64,000 nt of DNA, taken from contig JAPDFW010000070.1 in assembly GCA_028826165.1 (NCBI GenBank), positions 1,364,001 to 1,428,000 of the forward strand, in the 5' to 3' direction. Every line of letters begins with the position of its first letter. Position 1 is the first letter of the stretch. This document shows positions 27,087 through 52,807 of this stretch, piece by piece. This stretch comes from Anaeramoeba ignava BMAN. Taxonomy: Eukaryota; Protista; Anaeramoebae. Made by a program: the position numbers and the translations under genes. The notes under the pieces were generated by a model, which worked only from the letters and a program-made list of their open reading frames with translations, made no database searches and was not told the DNA's origin.

Positions 27087-30000
27087 ATGAGCACAATAAA
27101 TCAAGGAAAAGATAATTTATTAAATCAATTATTTCAAGAATTGAAGAAAAAAAACGAAGAAATCAAAAGAAAAGCTGCAGAAAACCTGAAGCTATATGTA
27201 AAAGATCGTTCAATGGAATTAAGTGGAGAAGCATTTACAGTTTTTATGAATGATCTAAACAGGAGAATTTTTGAATTTGTTAATTCAACTGACATAAATG
27301 AAAAATTGGGGGGAGTGATCGCTATTGATGAACTTATTGATGTTCGTGGAGAAGATAACGCTTTAAAAATGACACGTTTTTCAAATTATTTGCGACATGT
27401 TCTTGCCACTAATGATCCTGCTATTATGAAAACCGCTGCAAAAACGCTCAGTCATTTAGCTAAAGTTGGTGGTGCTTTAACAGCAGATTTTGTTGAATCG
27501 GAACTTAAAAAAGCTCCTTGAATGGCTTCAGGATGAGAAAATTGAATCCAGAAAACAAACTGCTTTATTGATTTTAACTGAATTAACTAGATCTGCTCCT
27601 ACTATTTTTTATACTCATATTCATACATTTTTGATGTTATTTGGAACGCTTTGAAACATAATAAGGTTAATATTCGTGAAGCTGCTGTTGTTACTTTGCG
27701 TGCTGGTTTGAAATTAATTAATTCTAGAGAGAAAAAATTAAGAGATCAATGGTATTTTAAAATTTATTCTGAAGCTCAAAAAGTATTTTTTTTATACAAT
27801 TTTCCAAATGAAATTTAAAATGAAATTTAAAATGAAATTTAAAAATGAAATTTAAAATGAAATTTAAAATGAAATTTATTTTAAATATTTATATTTATAT
27901 TTATATTTATATTTTAAATATTTATATTTATATTTGTATTTATATTTATATTTATATTTATATTTATATTTATATTTTAAATATTTATATTTATATTTAT
28001 ATTTATATTTTAAATATTTATATTTGTATTTTAAATATTTATATTTATATTTATATTTTAAATATTTATATTTATATTAAAATATTAGTATATCAAACAA
28101 AATAATTCAGATTCAATACATGGCGCACTTCTTGTTTTTGGGGAACTTTTAAGTATAACAGATTCTTTTATTGAATCTTATTTTGGTGAAGTTTGCGATT
28201 TAATATTTTCATTTAGAGATCATAAAGATAAAACAGTTAGAAAAGCTGTAATATATTTAATTCCATTACTTGCAAAATTTTTTCCATCAGATTTTGTTAA
28301 TAGATATCTAGATATATCAATAAAACATACATTAAATTCTTTAAAGAAAGATTATATTGATAAAACAACTATTTTTCAAGCAATTGGAGATTTGTCATTA
28401 GTAATTTAAAATTAATTTAAAATTAATTTAAAATTCATTTAAAATTTAAAATTTAAAATTTAAATTGAAAAAATTTTTTCTTTTTTTTAGGCTGTTAATC
28501 AACAAATTATGCCTTATATTAAAGATATTATGCAAAAAATTAGAGATTCTTTAGTTGTTACGAAGAAAAAAAATTATTGCCCAGAAGCTATGATTTGTGT
28601 TGCTCAACTTTCATCATCATTAAAAACACAACTTGTTGAAGAAATTAAAAAAAATAATATACTTGGTTAATTTTTTAAAAAATTATCTTTTTATCAAAAC
28701 AAATCAAAATTTATTCAGTTCATTTTCTAAATTGAAAAAAAAAACAAATTAATAGATTCAATGTTTAATTCAGGATTAAGTGAAATTTTAATCAGATCTT
28801 TATCACAAATATCAAGAAATATACCTGATTTAAAGCTTGAAATTCAAGAAAGAGTTTTGAATACTCTTTCAATAATTTTATCAAGAAAACCTTATTTTAC
28901 ACCCAAATCTGTTATTGAATCTACAGTAAATACAAATACTCGATTAAATGATTCATTAACTATTGCTATTGATTCAAGCACTCCACAAGTTATTCTTGCT
29001 TTACAAACATTAAGGACATTTGATTTTGGAACAAATGATTTATTGGAATTTGTTCGTGATAAAGTTCTTGTTTATTTGGAAAGTGAAACTGGAGAAATTC
29101 GAACAGAAGCAACAACAACATGTATCAAGATTTTAGTATGCAGTGTTAGTGAGAAAAAAGAGATTGGATCATTTCGTGAAAAACAAGTTGAAAATATTTT
29201 GCATAAGGTTTTAATGCTTGGGATTATTGATCCAGGTTAAATTTCAATTCAATATAAAATTAAATATAATATAATATAATATAAATTAAAATATAAAATA
29301 AAATATAATATAAATTAAATATAAAATTAATTATAAAATTATTTATAAATTTAATATAATATAATATTATTTATAAATTAAATATAAAATAAATTTAATT
29401 ATAATATTAAAGATAACAGAAACAGATACGCAGTCTTCGACTCATTAGACCAAACTCTCGATCCATATCTTTCCAAAACATCTAACTTAGCTACATTATT
29501 TGTAGCACTCAATGACGAAATGTTTGAAATACGAGAATTAGCAATAACAATAATAGGAAGATTATCAGAAAGAAATCCATCAGACGTTATGCCAACATTA
29601 AGGAAAACATTAATTCAGTTACTCTCTGAACTCGAATACACACAAGATCTGCGACTAAAAGAAGAAAGCGCACGTTCATTAGTTCATTTTATACGGTCGA
29701 CTAAGCAATTAAACAAAGCATATTGCAAATCAATATTGCGAGATTTATTACCAAAATTAACAAGCTTAGCAAAAAGCAAGACACATTCAGGAATTTTTAT
29801 GCAGGTTCTTGCTGCGATTGGCGAACTTGGGATGATCGGAAGAGAACATATTGCACCTTATGTGGATCAGCTTGTGGCGCTGATTCTGGAAACTCTTCAA
29901 GAACAAAGCGATCCTGTTCATAGGAAAATTGCATTATACACTTTGGGACAACTTATTGAAAGTACTGGATGGGTTATAGACCCTTATGTCAAGTTCCCTA

Positions 30001-33000
30001 GACTCATGAATACCCTCTTAATCCTTCTTCGCACAGGAAGAGACGAGCAAATCAAGAAAGATGTGCTCAGAATTATGGGAATGCTCGGCGCATTGGATCC
30101 ATACAGACAGAAAATGGTTGTCAGTCACATTTCGGATGTAAATGAAAACGTTGCTGCTAATGCCGGAAGAAGTGGCGGGGGTGTAGCTGTAAATGGCACA
30201 GGAAAAAGAACAAAATCGCGCGGAGGAGCTGCCAAAGTCACAGGAAAAAGAACAGAAGACGAAATAAGTGGACGAGTTGGGGGCAAAGGTGGTAAAGATG
30301 GAGCTAAGAAAAACGAGAAAGCGGCGAGAGGGAATCGCGAGAAAACAAGCGGAACAACGGATCCGATTCTGCCTGGAATATGTCTGTCATTTGACAAATA
30401 TTACGCGTCGGTTGCGATTGATGCGCTAATGAAGATACTTGCTGATCCGACATTGGCAACACATCACACAATGGTTGTGCAGGCATTGATGTTTATATGC
30501 AAATCACTGGGGACTCGAATTGTGCCGTTTTTGGGACAGATTATGCCATCATTTCTAAGTGCGGCTAAGAAAAGCGAGCCACGACTTAGGGAGTTTTTAT
30601 TCCAGCAACTTCCTGGAATTGTGACAATTGTGAGACACAATATCCGCGAATACACTGATGAGATTCTAACGTTAATCCGGGAGTTTTGGGGAGATGATGT
30701 GCTTCCCTACAGTGTGCAACTACTTGAGCAACTTTCCGAATTAAGCGCTGCCAAATTCAAAGTGCATCTTCCAAGCCTTCTTCCGTTGATGTTCAACAGC
30801 ATGCTTGGAGAAAACAACGACGAAAGAAAAGTGACCCAAATTGTGCTTCGTGCGCTAGAGCAATTTGGGCGAAATCTAGACGACGCAGCACATCTTGTTG
30901 TGCCTGTTTTAATCAAACTTTTCGAGCAAGTAAACTCGCCCATCGGCGTGAGAATTGCAGCCATTAAAACACTTGGCGGACTGGCAATCCGTGTTGGACT
31001 TGGGGATTATTCCTCTCGGATCATGCACTCATTAACACGCGTTCTCTGCGTCAATCACGGAGAGCTTAGAACAGCAGTGATGGAGACGTTCTGCAGTATT
31101 GCAATCCAGCTGCAGAGAGAGTACATTATCTATGTCCCAATGGTCGGCGCTGTTCTCGCTGCTAACAGAATACACTACCATCCCTATGACACCATTGTTA
31201 TCAAGCTTCTCAAGAACGAGCCTCTCCCAAGTGTTTCTCTATCGCAAACTTCCGACAGCTCTCTGCAGAACACCTCGGAAAAATCTCGGACAGGAAGGTT
31301 CGGAGAGTCGATCACAAACGACAATGCAGATGACAGTATGGTGCTTCTTTCTTCCGAACTCTCTCTTGATATGGAAATTTCACAGTTAAATTCTGACAGT
31401 GGTGATCCTTTAGCAATTTCGGGGGGACCTAATTCGGAAAAAAAAGGAATATCCCTTTCCGGCAAAGACGGTGAAGAATCACGAAAACCACCGAAAAAAC
31501 TGTATGTGAATCAAGCAGTTCTGAAGAAAGCCTGGGACGCAACTGCCCGATCTACGCGGGAAGATTGGGAGGAATGGATCCGCAAGTTTGCTGTTGAGCT
31601 TCTTTATCAGTCACCGTCTCCTGTCTTGCGGTCGTGTTCTGGACTTGCCCAGATTTATCATCCACTTTCAAGAAGACTCTTCTACGCTGGGTTTTTGAGC
31701 TGCTGGAACGAGCTTTACGATCAGTATCAAGACGAGCTTGTGCACAGTTTAGAAACAGCGTTTATTGCAGATAGTATTCCACCAGATATTCTGCAATTAC
31801 TTCTGAATCTGACAAAATTCATGGAGCATGTTGACAAAACGCTTCCAATCAACATTGGAACTCTGAGCGAACTTGCTATTAAATGTCATGCGTATCCGCT
31901 TGCATTGCGATATAAAGAGCTTGAGTTTCAAACAAATCCATCAGGAACAATTGAGGCGTTTAATCTCTATTAATAATCAATTACAACACAGCGAAGCCGC
32001 GGTTGGAGTTCTGCGGTTTGCGCAACAAAATCACGCAATTGAATTGAAGGAGTCGTGGTATGAGGAACTCAAATCGGTGGGAAGATGCGCTTGCAGCATA
32101 TGATGCGCCGCGAGTACCAGACATAGGTGAGCGAGCGCTTCAAAGAACACTGGGAAAAATCAGGTGTCTTCATGCACTCGGCGACTGGGAGCCTCTTTCG
32201 GATCTTGTCCGCGGGATGTGGGACACAACGGATCCCGAAACACGCAACAGTATTGCAAGCATTGCCGCACTTTCTGCATGGAACACAGCAGATTGGGCCA
32301 CAATGGATCTCTATGTCTCTGCAATTCCACAGTCTTCTATAGAAGGCGCCTTTCTCCGCGCCGTTGTTTGTGTTCATCAAGACGATTTTCTCCGCGCTTC
32401 TGCGCTTATTGATGCCACACGCAGAAGTGTTATCGATACCTTCGGCGCACTTGTTAGTGAATCTTATGGAAGAGCATATAACGAGGTTGTTCTTCTTCAA
32501 CAACTTTCCGAACTCGAGGAAGTCATCGAATACAAGCATGCCCAACGCGATTCTGATCTCCTTAAAATGCAACTTATTCGCGAAAAATGGAGGAAAAGGC
32601 TTCTTGGTTGCGAAAATAATATCTCTGTTTGGCAGCGCATTATGGCTGTCCATTCCTTAGTCGTTCCCCCAGAACAAAATCTTGCTGCTTGGATCAAATT
32701 TGCCTCAATTTGCAGAAATGGTGGCAATTTAAGACTTTCTGAAAAGGTTATCACTTCTTTTTTGCGTCATGCAAGAGATTTATATGGCAAAAATTTAACA
32801 GACAATTCGCATGATTTTGATGAGAATCTGAACAAGAAATTAAATGATCTCAAATTAATGAATAATTTTAATGAAAATAATAATAATTTTAATGAAAATA
32901 AGATTGAATTTGATGAAAATAATATGGAAATTAATAAACTGGAAAATATCCCTTCAAAAATAGAAAAGATCCCCAAACCGCGAAGAAAGCAATCCATCAA

Positions 33001-35743
33001 ACTTTTAGACATCCATGAATCAAATCTTGTGATTGTGCATCCTCACATCGCAATGGCATATTTTGAGCACTTATGGGATGAAGGGAAGCAAATACAAGCG
33101 GTTGAAAAACTAAAAAATTACACTTTAAAACTCCCACACATTTTTGCGGAATATGCAGAACCAATCCGCACATACACATACTGTCTACACAGCACTTCAA
33201 AGAACAACGAAAAAATCGCTCAAAACATACAACAAGAACAGACCATTTTCTCGTTGACAAATTCTCGGTCAATAAGCTCGCCTCTTCTTCATTTAGACAC
33301 GACAGATAGACCAAAGGATATGGTGTCGCGATTGCACGCCAAATTCTACCTCAAACTTGGTGAGTGGCAAAGCGCTCTTTGTGAGGGAGAAATAAATCCA
33401 ACTGATAAAGTTGTTGAACAAATTCTCCAAGCGTTCCAAAAATCAACCCAATGCGATCCACAATGGTATCGTGCTTGGCATTCTTATGCACTCGTGAATT
33501 TCGAGATCTTATCCGCTCTTGAAGGAGTTGATCCACTCACAGACGCACAGATCCAAAAATATCTGATCCCTTCAATAAAAGGATTTTTCCAGTCAATTCT
33601 TCACAGTAAATTCGGACAAAGCATTCGAGACACACTCCGTCTTCTCACTCTTCTTTTCAAGCACGGAAAAACCCCTCAATCAACCCAAGCATTCATCGAG
33701 GGATTCAGTACAGTTTCTATAGATACTTGGCTCCAAGTTATCCCCCAAATTATTGCTCGTATTCACACCCCTTCTCAACCTGTGCGAGAGTTAATCAACC
33801 ATCTGCTCTCTGAGATCAGCAAGGAACATCCCCAGGCACTTGTCTATCCTCTCACAGTCGCCTCAAAATCTCGATCTGCAAGACGCACATCATTCCACCA
33901 AGAACTCCAAAAAGAATCCCCTCAAAAAAAGAAAATACCCCTTAAAAATGTCAATGTCAATGCCAATGTCAATGTCAATACCAAGTTGAAATTCAACGCA
34001 AACCAAAACGAAAACATCACAAGCAAAACAGATGTCAGTCGAGAAATTCTCGAGAACATGAAATCCTTGAGACCGAATCTCGTTGAACAAGCGGAAATGG
34101 TTTCACAGGAATTGATCCGAGTAGCGATCTTGTGGAACGAGATGTGGCACGAAAGTCTTGAAATTGCGTCAAAATACTACTACAAAGAAGGCAATGTCGA
34201 AGCGATGATAGCAGCACTTCAACCGATGCACGAGAAGTTGGAGAAGGGACCCGAAACAGCACGGGAGATATCATTTGCGCAGGCATATGGAGCAGAACTT
34301 GAACTAGCAAAAGCGTGGACTGAAAGATATCAGAAAACGGGTCATTTAGGGGATCTTTCACAAGCATGGAATTTATATTCGTATGTTTTCACACACATTT
34401 CCAAAGAGATTACACAGTTGTCAACGGTTGAGCTCCAGTATGCATCACCACGTCTCCAGAAATCGAAGAATCTTGAGCTCGCAGTGCCAGGAACATACCG
34501 CGCAGGAGAACCAGTTGTGCATATAAGATCATTTGCACCAGCATTACTTGTGATACCGTCGAAGCAGCGTCCGCGCAAGGCGAAGATCTACGGCAGTACA
34601 GGCGCAGCGTACCGGTTTCTACTGAAAGGTCACGAAGATCCGCGACAAGACGAACGTGTGATGCAACTTTTCGGACTTGTCAACAACTTGCTCTCCAACA
34701 CTCCCAGCACATCCAAAATGCATCTCCGAATCCAGCGCTATGCCGTTGTGCCATTATCACCAAACTCCGGACTCATTGGCTGGGTGCCGCATTGCGACAC
34801 ATTGAACAAATTAATCCGCGAATATCGTGAAGCAAACAAAATTCTCCTCGACATCGAGCGACGGTTGATGGATCAAATGGCGCCGGATTACGACAAACTC
34901 AACCTAATCCAAAAGGTCGAGGTTTTCAAGCACTCCCTCGATAACACCACAGGCCAAGACATCGACAGGGTACTCTGGCTCAAAAGTGAGAATTCTGAAA
35001 TATGGTTGGACCGGCGAACCACTTATACAAGATCACTAGCTGTCATGTCAATGGTCGGTTATATTCTCGGACTTGGTGACAGGCATCCTTCCAATCTCAT
35101 GATGGATCGTTTCACAGGCAAGATTCTCCACATCGACTTCGGAGACTGTTTCGAGGTTGCAATGCTGCGCAAACAGTTTCCCGAAAAGGTTCCCTTCCGT
35201 TTGACAAGAATGCTTATCAACGCAATGGAGGTTTCCGGTATTGAAGGCAATTTCCGCTCAACTTGCGAGCTTGTCATGTCCGTTCTTCGCGACAACAAAG
35301 ACTCCCTTATGGCTATTCTCGAGGCTTTTGTCTACGACCCGCTTGTCAACTGGCACATTATGCGTCAAAGTAAAAATCTTTCTGGTCCGCAATTTTCTCA
35401 ACAGGAAAAAATTCCAGATTCTGATGCTCTTTTCCCTTCAAATCTTCGTAAACAAGAACCCCAAAATCAACCTCAAGACCCAAAGAAAAAAAAACCGTAT
35501 CTGATCCAAAATGTCCAAAATATCCCTAAAAATTCTAATTCTATTTCTGATTCTGATCCTGAAGAAATTCTTAATTCTCAAGTTCTTGGTGTTATTAAGC
35601 GAATATCAAATAAATTGACAGGTAAAGATTTTGAACCAGATAAAACGTTGAATGTTCCTCAACAGGTTGATAGGCTTATTCTCCAGGCTACTTCTCATGA
35701 AAATTTATGTCAAGCTTATTCTGGTTGGTGTCCTTTTTGGTGA
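27087..35743 (+). CDS. TOR: Target of rapamycin kinase (HEAT-FAT-FRB-PIKK-FATC); 5 exons
   Basis: Introns 27783-28088, 28401-28490, 28666-28755 and 29236-29412. [21 protein letters not shown]; kinase [30 protein letters not shown]; [16 protein letters not shown]. Apparent 1-nt frameshifts near 27516, 27632, 31960 and 32071. Confidence 0.97.
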
Positions 35744-49029: not shown

Positions 49030-50870
49030 AAATCAAATTCAAAATCAAAATCAAAATTAAAATCAAATTCAAAATATAAATCAAAATCAAAATATAAATC
49101 AAATTCAAAATATAAATCAAATATAAATCAATATCAAAATATAAATCAAATTCCATATCAAAATATAAATCAAATTCAAAATATAAATCAATATCAAAAT
49201 ATAAATCAAATTCCATATCAAAATCAATATCAAAATCAAAATTAAAAATCAAATTCAAAATATAAATCAAAATCAAATTCAAAATCAAATTCAAAATATA
49301 AATCAAAATATAAATCAATTTCAAATTCAATTTCAAATTCAATTTCAAATTCAATTCAAAATAAAAATCAAAATCAATATATAAATCAAATTCAAAATAT
49401 AAATCAATATCAAAATCAAATTCAAATTCAAAATATAAATTCAAAATATAAATCAAAATCAAATTCAAAATATAAATCAAAATATAAATCAAAATTAAAA
49501 ATCAATATATAAATCAAATATAAATCAAATTCAAAATATAAATCTAAACCAAATTCAATATCAAAATCAAAATATAAATCAAAATATAAATCAAAATACA
49601 AATCAAAATACAAATCAAAATATAAACCAAAATCAAAATATAAATCAAAATATAAATCAAATTAAAAATATAAATATAAATCAAAATCAAAATCAAAATC
49701 AAAATATAAATCAAATTCAAATTCAAATTAATATCAAAATATAAATCAAAATCAAAATTAAAATCAAATTCAAATCAAATTAATATCAAAATCAATATCA
49801 AATTCAATATCAAATTCAAAATATAAATCAATATCAAATTCAAAATATAAATCAAAATATAAATCAAATTCAAAATCAAATTCAATACCAAAATATAAAT
49901 CAAAATATAAATCAAATTCAAAATATAAATCTAAACCAAATTCAAAATATAAATCAAATTCAAAATCAAAATCAAAATATAAATCAAATTCAAATTCAAA
50001 TTCAAAATCTAAATATAATTCAAAATCAATATCAAATTCAATTTCAAATTCAAATCCAAAATATAAATCAAAATATAAATCAAATTCAAAATATAAATTT
50101 AAACCAAATTCAAAATATAAATCAAATTCAAAATCAAAATCAAAATATAAATCAAAATCAAAATCAAAAATAAAAATCAAAATCAAATTAAAAATCAAAT
50201 TCAAATTCAAATTATAAATCAAAATCAATATCAATATCTAAATATAAATATAATTCAAAATCAATTTCAAATTCAAAATCAAATATAAATCAAATTCAAA
50301 ATCAAATTCAAAATCAAATATAAATCAAAATATAAATCAATTCCAAATTCAATTTCAAATTCAAAATCAAATTCAAATTCAAAATATAAATCAAATTCAA
50401 AATCTAAATTAAAATCTAAATTAAATTAAAATTCAATATCAAAATATAAATTAAATCCAAAATATAAATCAAATTCAAAATATAAATCAATATCTAAATA
50501 TAAATCAAAATCAAAATCAAAATCCAAATCAAATTAAAAATCAAAATATAAATTAAATTCAAAATCAAAATTAAAATTAATATCTAAATTAAATCAAAAT
50601 CAAAATCAATATCTAAATTAAATCAAAATCAAAATCAAAATATAAATCAAAATATAAATCAAAATAAAAATCAAAATCAAATTCAATATCAAATTAAAAA
50701 TCAAAATAAAAATCAAAATCAAAATATAAATCAAAATCAAAATCAAAATCAAAATATAAATCAAATTCAAATTCAAAATTAAATTATAAATTAAAAATAT
50801 AAATATAAATCAAAATCAAATTCAAAATACAAATTCAAAATATAAATCAAATTCAAAATCAAAATTAAAT
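49030..50870. repeat. ~1.85-kb intergenic degenerate satellite (AAAATC/AAATTC/AAAATATAAATC), G-free on the + strand
   Basis: Seen directly; no splice sites and no credible coding frame. Confidence 0.9.
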
Positions 50871-50953
50871 AAAAAAGAAATTTTAATTTTTTTTAATTTT
50901 AATTTTTTTTAATTTTTTATTTTAAATAGAAATATTTTTTGAAAATTTTTTTT

Positions 50954-51033
50954 GAGGTTTTTAAAAAAATTTAAAAAAATGGCACGTTCATTCTAGTTGA
51001 AATCGGAGCAAGTTCAAAACTTGCAAAACCTCA
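50954..51033 (+). ncRNA. tRNA-like element 1 (acceptor-like stem plus T-arm, degenerate D region)
   Basis: GAGGTTTT/AAAACCTC terminal stem; GCAAG-TTCAAAA-CTTGC arm resembling a B-box; internal hairpin TTCA-TTCTAGT-TGAA; downstream T-run. Confidence 0.5.
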
Positions 51034-51115
51034 TTATTTTTTTTATTTAAAATTTAATTAAAAATAATTTTTTAATTTTTATTTTAAATAGAAATATTTT
51101 TTGAAAATTTTTTTT

Positions 51116-51190
51116 GAGGTTTTGGAAAAAAGGATTAAAAGCATGTTTAAGAATATGAATGGTACAAGTTCATAACTTGTAGAAACCTCA
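51116..51190 (+). ncRNA. tRNA-like element 2
   Basis: GAGGTTTT/GAAACCTC stem; A-box-like TGGAAAAAAGG starting at position 8; hairpin CATGT-TTAAGA-ATATG; arm TACAAG-TTCATAA-CTTGTA. Confidence 0.5.
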
Positions 51191-51218
51191 TTATTTTAAA
51201 TTATTTTTTTTTTTTTTT

Positions 51219-51267
51219 GATTTAAAAAAGAAAAAAAATTAAATAAGTTCTAAACTTATAAACCTCA
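51219..51267 (+). pseudogene. Truncated tRNA-like element 3
   Basis: ATAAG-TTCTAAA-CTTAT arm and AAACCTCATTATTTT are retained; the 5' half is degenerate. Confidence 0.4.
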
Positions 51268-51296
51268 TTATTTTTATTTTTATTTTTGTTTTTTTT

Positions 51297-52807
51297 TTAA
51301 TCCATTAAATCAAAATTTTCATTTAAAAATCTTTTCCCAAAATCACTAATTTGGAAACGCACAAAACAATCATTTTCCATTAATCGACAAATAGATTCTT
51401 GAGCAGAATCAAACATTTGCAAATCAAAATTTTGATTACGAACTCTTTCAGAAATTTTAGCTCTTTCTTTAAAATCAATATTAATCTCTTTTGGTGATCC
51501 AGTTTTCACAAATTGTTGAAAAATTTTCAAAGCATATTCATTCATTCCAATTTTGGATTGTCCAATTTCAATTTTTCGAAAATTTTCCACTTCTTGCCAA
51601 AAGTCAATATTTTCTTCTGAATATTCTGTTTGAAGAAAAGAACGGAAATAAATAGTTGAATTTTTCACAAATAAAAATTCAGAAAAATTCGAAAAATATT
51701 TCTCTTTTAATCTTGAATATTCTTCTTCATTCAATTCCTTTTTTTGTGACTTCTTTTGTTTTTGAAGCTTTTTTTGCTTCCTTTTCTGGATAATTCTTGT
51801 AAATTTGCTACTAATTTTATTCTCGTTTTCAATATTTATTTTTTTCTTTTGTTTCATTTGATTTTGATTTTGATTTTGATTTTGATTTTGATTTTGATTT
51901 TGAACACTTTTTCTTTTCTTGTTTTTGTTTTTGTTTTTGTTTTTGTTTTTTTTTTTGCTTTTTTTTGCTTTTTCTTTCAGTTTTTTTTCTTGATTGAAAA
52001 AAGGTTGATTTTGTTCAACAGTTGAAACTTGGCTCAATGATTTTCTTATTGGGAAAATTTTGGATCGAATTAATTGATCATTTTTTTGAGGAGAATTTTG
52101 AGTAATCTATTTTTTTTTAAAAAAAAAGTGGAACAAAGTTTTTTTATGAAAAATTAAAAGAATGAAAAATAAAATTTCTTGTTTTAAGTGAAAAATACTT
52201 TTTTTGGAGAAGGAAACTCTTCATTTTTAATTTTGTTTTGGTTTTCTTTTGAATTTTCTTTTGGGTTTTCTTTTGGGTTTTGATTTTCACTTTTATCATC
52301 ATCATCATCAAGATCATTTTCAAAAACAATAATTTTAACATTATTTTGATTTGTTTCTTTTGGTTTTAATTCTCGAGCCGTTAAACTTCTTTGATGTTGA
52401 TGTAATTTCTGGAATTTAGGTTGATATTGTTGTTGAAATTGATGTTGTTGTCTTAAATGACTAAAATGTTGAGAAATTCGATTTCTTTTTTGATTTAAAA
52501 TTGAAGAAGAAAAAACAAGATCTTGATTCATTAAAAGATTATTTTTTGGATTTGAAATGAAATTTTGATTTTAGATTTGGATTTTGATTTTGATTTGAAA
52601 TTAAAATTTGATTTGATTTTGATTTGGATTTTGATTTTGATTTATATTAATTTTCATTGGTGAAAATGTTCTTTTGAAATCATTTGTAAAAGAATTGCTT
52701 CTTGAATGAAATTTTTGGATCATTTTAGGTTGTTCATTCGAAATTTGTGTTGAATTTTCTGAAATTATATCTCTTGCTACAAATAATCCAAGAGTATAAA
52801 AATCCAT
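51297..52807 (-). CDS. RGS-domain protein (regulator of G-protein signalling) with a long low-complexity N-terminus
   Basis: YFRSFLQTEYSEENIDFWQEVENFR..IFQQFVKTGSPKEINID..MFDSAQESICRLMENDCFVRF. Intron at about 52108-52198. The 5' structure is approximate. Confidence 0.88.

Follow-up and report, generated by a model that had tools for sequence, protein, structure and literature searches.

In the genome of Anaeramoeba ignava, three small tandem elements with a tRNA-like layout, matched stem changes and seemingly unrelated middles raise the question of whether they form a selected non-coding RNA family, with a constant scaffold and a guide-like segment, or have a more ordinary origin. The stretch that we analysed (the window, 64,000 nt) is part of contig C60 of a eukaryotic assembly of 42.8 Mb in 147 contigs. 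By composition, non-coding DNA in the window is approximately 10–20% GC and the genes are much higher in GC; the published A+T content of the Anaeramoeba ignava genome, 80.65% (PMC11550330), fits the genome from which the window comes.

Three tandem units beside an RGS-domain gene

The cluster has mTOR, RCC1-BTB and RGS-domain genes around it, and the mTOR gene (29520–35743), with 41–45% GC against 10–20% around it, shows how extreme the contrast between coding and non-coding composition is. The sequence-only reading had reported three hairpins with covarying-looking stems and 7-nt TTCnnAA loops, a common tail after each hairpin and an identical 43-nt segment in units 1 and 2, and all three observations hold (Table 1). 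The segment at 50919–50961 is identical to that at 51081–51123, and the tail, the 15-mer AAACCTCATTATTTT, follows each hairpin and has three exact copies in the 42.8-Mb genome, all at the cluster; its one-mismatch variants number 33, compared with 65 for the reversed control. Such features are well beyond what chance would produce. The description of a three-unit trio applies to units 1 and 2, in which GAGGTTT pairs with AAACCTC, but not to unit 3, a 3′ fragment that lacks the GAGG 5′ partner and has a folding z of approximately 0 beyond its hairpin. On the plus strand, units 1 and 2 fold better than shuffled sequences (z −2.4 and −2.7, respectively), and the minus strand is weaker (z −1.7).

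Table 1 Features of the cluster and its borders, in window coordinates
Feature	Position	Strand	Remarks
Long CAAAAT/ATAAAT-type simple-repeat array, part	49400–50860		Left border of the cluster
5′ flank of unit 1	50919–50953	+	AT-rich; holds TTTAAATAG; identical to 51081–51115
Unit 1, putative heavily decayed tRNA-type pseudogene	50954–51033	+	80 nt; no ARAGORN or Rfam call
Unit 1, acceptor 5′ strand	50954–50960	+	
Unit 1, T arm (hairpin 1)	51008–51024	+	GCAAG/CTTGC, 7-nt loop TTCAAAA; spacer A follows
Unit 1, acceptor 3′ strand	51026–51032	+	
Unit 1, discriminator A	51033	+	
Unit 1, trailer with T-run	51034–51043	+	Pol III terminator type; same trailer type after the intact tRNA
5′ flank of unit 2	51081–51115	+	Identical to the unit 1 flank
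Unit 2, putative moderately decayed tRNA-type pseudogene	51116–51190	+	75 nt; no Rfam tRNA match
Unit 2, T arm (hairpin 2)	51164–51180	+	ACAAG/CTTGT, 7-nt loop TTCATAA; two spacer bases follow
Unit 2, acceptor 3′ strand	51183–51189	+	
Unit 3, 3′ fragment only	51243–51267	+	25 nt; 18.5 bits in the covariance-model scan
Unit 3, T arm (hairpin 3)	51243–51259	+	ATAAG/CTTAT, 7-nt loop TTCTAAA
RGS-domain gene, last exon	51297–52037	−	Convergent; context of the cluster
RGS-domain gene, stop codon	51297–51299	−	29 nt separate it from the end of unit 3

Genome-wide pattern searches with the 41-nt flank, the hairpin plus tail and the full unit, of the kind that the sequence-only reading had proposed for finding more copies, returned no match beyond the cluster locus. 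Comparison of the intergenic DNA with other species is hopeless because the only sequenced relative has a mean protein identity of 37% (PMC11550330), and a word search for RGS homologues that could supply comparative data found none.

An intact AT-rich relative of the units

We built a covariance model (R1) on units 1 and 2 only, taking the terminal stem and the hairpin for its structure, and searched the whole genome. Besides both units, the search of the 42.8 Mb gave one significant match, C71:1055454–1055533(−), at 48.4 bits, and ARAGORN identified C71:1055461–1055533(−) as tRNA-Ile(aat). Under the Rfam tRNA model RF00005, which has a gathering score of 29, this copy reaches 54.3 bits; its acceptor, D, anticodon and T arms all align, with a single G-A mismatch at 31–39, and the gene folds as a cloverleaf whose anticodon loop has the form Y32-U33-NNN-R37. 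As in cytosolic tRNA-Ile(AAU), the C71 copy has U33, the anticodon AAT, A37, G18G19, the T loop GTTCAAATC and discriminator A; the units in the window fall short of the defining features of that tRNA. The approximately 31 nt upstream of the C71 tRNA lie outside the model and resemble the last approximately 31 nt of the unit flanks, a similarity equalled by 0.1–0.2% of AT-rich controls (p ~0.001 for the unit 1 flank against AT-rich segments). Genome-wide, the flank motif occurs before units 1 and 2 and the C71 tRNA, plus at two chance-level matches with nothing tRNA-like downstream. At the level of sequence, the homology of the units to a genuine tRNA-Ile(AAT) gene is thus shown to be specific and to exceed what tRNAs have in common, because R1, to which only the units contributed, picks out one tRNA gene genome-wide and the unmodelled flank is similar as well.

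A refined model (R2), to which the C71 copy was added, found no additional members in the genome; its weak match on contig C35 reached 28.6 bits (E 3.3). Another weak model match, at 32 bits, was set aside and sits in coding-like DNA. For the C71 copy we used the model-based alignment, as MAFFT misaligned its 3′ end. Three canonical tRNA-Ile(AAT) genes are present elsewhere in the genome (52% GC, 65.3 bits), so decoding is independent of the units; the stems of the AT-rich family, whose C71 member is 33% GC, have no specific similarity to those of the canonical genes. A dispersed non-coding RNA or guide family with many copies is rejected by the genome search, which finds the cluster and one tRNA gene only.

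Aligned with the C71 tRNA, the parts of the units acquire evident counterparts. GAGGTTT/AAACCTC is evidently the 7-bp acceptor stem, with the next A as discriminator; the TTC hairpin is the apparent T arm (G53, T54 T55 C56 R57 A58, C61) and the T-run the apparent Pol III terminator; the TGGAA...GG that follows the stem in unit 2 reads as the U8-G10...G18G19 stretch; and the "unrelated middles" are, on this alignment, damaged D and anticodon arms. The tRNA-like layout reported earlier therefore stands as to the terminal stem, the TTC arm, the T-run and the relevance of the plus strand, now with homology to tRNA-Ile(AAT), but its likening to vault RNA finds no Rfam match.

Each unit carries lesions of its own. 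In unit 1, an A/T run replaces the D arm, G18G19 is lost, the anticodon stem is absent and one spacer base has appeared. Unit 2 keeps the acceptor stem and TGGAAAAAAGG, a D-loop/A-box remnant with the GG, but has no D stem; its 5-bp anticodon-type stem is shifted by one, which leaves a 6-nt loop (TTAAGA), a T occupies the near-invariant A58 position, and two extra bases lie between the T stem and the acceptor strand. Only the 3′ third of unit 3 remains, namely the T arm, the acceptor 3′ strand AAACCTC and discriminator A, with the D and anticodon arms missing along with the rest of the 5′ two-thirds, and its purine 57 has become T. Among units 1–3, a canonical T loop of the T54 T55 C56 R57 A58 type is found in unit 1 only, and none has a D arm with G18G19 together with a 5-bp anticodon arm and a 7-nt loop. 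In neither full unit is the acceptor stem stacked directly on the T stem, one spacer base intervening in unit 1 and two in unit 2. Judged by structural lesions only, each unit would be ruled out as a working tRNA. In keeping with the lesions, neither ARAGORN nor Rfam, two of the detectors that the sequence-only reading had named, recognises a tRNA in the units: ARAGORN finds 0 genes in the window, and the Rfam tRNA model has no match at the gathering score in the window, none at E ≤ 10 over 801 nt and none at E ≤ 10 in the 96 nt around unit 2.

We consider it probable that the trio is a local cluster of tRNA pseudogenes, in which an AT-rich tRNA-Ile(AAU)-type gene is represented by two worn copies and one fragment. 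A segment of approximately 160 bp, comprising such a gene with its upstream flank and T-run terminator, would have been duplicated locally, presumably by unequal exchange or slippage. The constant parts would then be the acceptor stem, discriminator A, the flanks and a 5-bp T arm with a GTTCRANNC-type loop as the internal B box; substitutions and A/T-run indels would have eroded the D arm, anticodon arm and variable loop into the variable middle. The compensatory stem changes probably date back to a stage of working paralogs, and GC-to-AT mutation pressure may have helped. Today's copies could not decode; weak Pol III transcription may persist, as the B box survives in unit 1, and the flank and terminator in both full units.

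Known tRNA pseudogenes and partial duplicates likewise retain homology that includes the flanks, the acceptor and T arms and a Pol III terminator, have lost D and anticodon arms or are truncated, and escape tRNA detectors. The cluster differs from the usual case in that the parent type, at 33% GC, is unusual for a nuclear gene, and in that the intact copy is unlinked, on another contig, while the decayed copies form a small tandem array. The cluster is most likely real but ordinary, a set of unannotated tRNA pseudogenes, and should be annotated so; what appeared to be a covarying non-coding RNA family with a guide-like core would then be a clean negative, a group of decaying tRNA copies.

Divergence, covariation and competing explanations

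The middles of units 1 and 2, described as unalignable, do align, at 58% identity with indels and with common blocks such as GCAyGTTyA and GG..CAAG, and the middle of unit 2 is 67% identical to the D and anticodon arms of the C71 tRNA. Compared with that tRNA, unit 2 has diverged evenly along its length, its ends and flanks being 72% identical (Fisher p 0.69 against the middle). Between units 1 and 2, ends and flanks are identical at 78 of 87 positions and the middle at 30 of 52 (Fisher p 3e-5), a contrast that probably stems largely from the replaced D-arm segment of unit 1 and from indels. The flanks, near-pure A/T, close to mutational equilibrium and with little left to lose under GC-to-AT pressure, may add to it, and gene conversion between tandem copies may be a neutral source of uneven divergence.

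Across the three full copies, each of the 12 modelled stem pairs stays paired, and two double changes occur along with a G-U intermediate: at pair 7–66 the units have T-A where the C71 tRNA has A-T, and pair 49–65 runs through G-C, G-T and A-T across the full copies. At pair 50–64, unit 3 adds a C-G to T-A double change, though it is a mere fragment. The hairpin changes are all GC-to-AT, and by our own count, four such hits among six G/C stem positions would land as two complete pairs, nested as observed, with a probability of ~0.07. The covariation had been taken as a signal of selection; with so few sequences it is not significant and is equalled in 113 of 500 shuffles. The stem changes match the pattern of tRNA paralogs, and the G-T wobble agrees with the plus strand. 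The covariance model that the sequence-only reading had called for did yield one further genome match; that match is tRNA-Ile(AAT), no wider family emerged and the covariation fell short of significance. A selected family with a constant scaffold and a guide segment likewise finds no support, the single further copy being a normal cloverleaf tRNA and positions universal in tRNA being mutated in the units.

Uneven divergence and kept pairs are also expected from selection on a tRNA-like minihelix RNA, and this counts against the pseudogene reading. Units 1 and 2 might accordingly be functional tRNA-derived Pol III RNAs with a minihelix scaffold and a free central domain, serving, like vault RNA, Y RNA or mascRNA, in a non-decoding role, a reading that we regard as unlikely. 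It would draw on the perfectly paired acceptor and T stems with their compensatory changes, on plus-strand folds that beat shuffles, on the conserved upstream flank and T-run, on ends that differ significantly less between units 1 and 2 than the middle does, and on a genome with at least eight major-vault-protein loci, in which a vault RNA is expected somewhere. Like vault and Y RNAs, the units pair their 5′ and 3′ ends, carry a B-box-like hairpin ahead of the 3′ strand and have a T-run, and they are clustered paralogs in a genome with vault protein genes. They do possess a B-box-like loop, but the A-box-like TGG...GG occurs in unit 2 only, so that unit 1 differs from vault and Y RNAs in having no conserved A box, and no Ro- or TEP1-type motif was identified. 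The Rfam models for Vault (RF00006), Y_RNA and every other family give zero matches even at E ≤ 10. The full copies number only two, at a single locus and each damaged differently; the T-loop position needed for a tRNA-like fold is mutated in unit 2 (A58T); spacer bases break the coaxial stack of acceptor and T arm; the covariation is not significant; the divergence of unit 2 from the tRNA is uniform along its length; and nothing ties the locus to the vault genes. Homology to tRNA would explain every feature held in common with vault and Y RNA. It seems decidedly unlikely that units 1 and 2 constitute, perhaps together with the AT-rich tRNA-Ile-type gene, a young lineage of tRNA-derived Pol III small RNAs with a minihelix and a free centre; if they did, they would be candidate vault-RNA-like or Y-RNA-like partners in a metamonad that encodes many vault proteins.

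The cluster could also act as DNA, its TFIIIC-bound B-box relics setting up a boundary, or insulator, that separates the simple-repeat array from the RGS gene, much as tDNAs and 'extra TFIIIC' sites serve as boundaries in yeasts. A span of 250 bp, exactly between the CAAAAT-type array and the gene end, contains three T-arm/B-box-like sites, and the C71 relative likewise has a simple repeat on one side and, on the other, the 3′ end of a convergent gene. The argument is purely positional, however: of the three B-box-like loops, two have changes at conserved positions, and compact genomes put tRNA genes near other genes anyway, and we hold a boundary role to be very improbable. Hardly credible at all is that the elements are read on the minus strand, as 3′-UTR or terminator elements of the RGS gene or as guide-type RNAs that combine a constant handle with a unique segment and a T-run. 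The units do begin 29 nt downstream of the RGS stop on that strand, where each unit presents AATAATGAGG and then the hairpin, but the intact homologue is a tRNA on the strand that matches the plus strand of the window, and this orientation excludes the minus-strand guide RNA envisaged by the sequence-only reading. The G-T pair in the T stem of the C71 copy is a wobble on the tRNA-coding strand only, minus-strand folds are weaker, internal T-runs would halt Pol III on the minus strand, and the guide reading has zero further copies and zero targets. Decayed tandem copies of a tRNA gene thus remain our preferred reading.

Vault genes, AT-rich tRNAs and other observations

Major-vault-protein repeats were found at at least eight loci, on contigs C83, C72, C73, C87, C71 and C56, and vault particles are probably made in this host, judging from these gene sequences. 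To our knowledge, no vault RNA candidate is known in the host genome.

The C71 tRNA is absent from the genome-wide RF00005 list despite its 54.3 bits. Counts of AT-rich tRNA-type genes in this genome are probably too low, a practical trap in extremely AT-rich DNA, where such genes slip past fast filters. A 33%-GC tRNA-Ile(AAU) gene beside 52%-GC genes could represent an isodecoder that has diverged, a foreign acquisition or a gene in early decay. A search for its origin gave zero phage matches, and the T-arm word of the AT-rich tRNA matches unrelated bacterial or viral tRNAs (Leu, Trp) or non-tRNA DNA.

At both the window locus (51267–51299) and the C71 locus, the stop codon of a convergent protein gene lies 27–29 nt from the 3′ end of the tRNA or tRNA-like element. 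The convergent partner is the RGS gene in the window and a PfkB-like C-terminus on C71, and a simple repeat lies upstream at both loci. The mRNA 3′ ends of both convergent genes must be very short, or else overlap the tRNA gene in antisense.

Several other candidate features were set aside. An snRNA-type gene was rejected on the CCATAATT box, which we derived from U6 and U2 genes: the box lies 60–100 nt upstream at U6 and three U2 loci and is absent, on either strand, within 20 kb of the units. Among the U2 matches, the two on C57 and C67 are short and near-identical, with a score of only 52 bits. An initiator-like reading of TCATTATTTT was dropped, as TCATT[AT]TTT is common in the window (46 matches) and no plus-strand gene follows the units, and short ORFs (5–14 codons, either strand) were judged meaningless. 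A search with an anticodon-loop/T-loop pattern also brought up CTAATAAATTCCCAAGATTTTGTTCAAGAC, which draws no ARAGORN tRNA call and occurs in four copies, at C5:1396, C55:252450, C62:412167 and C70:444852, one of which differs by one base.
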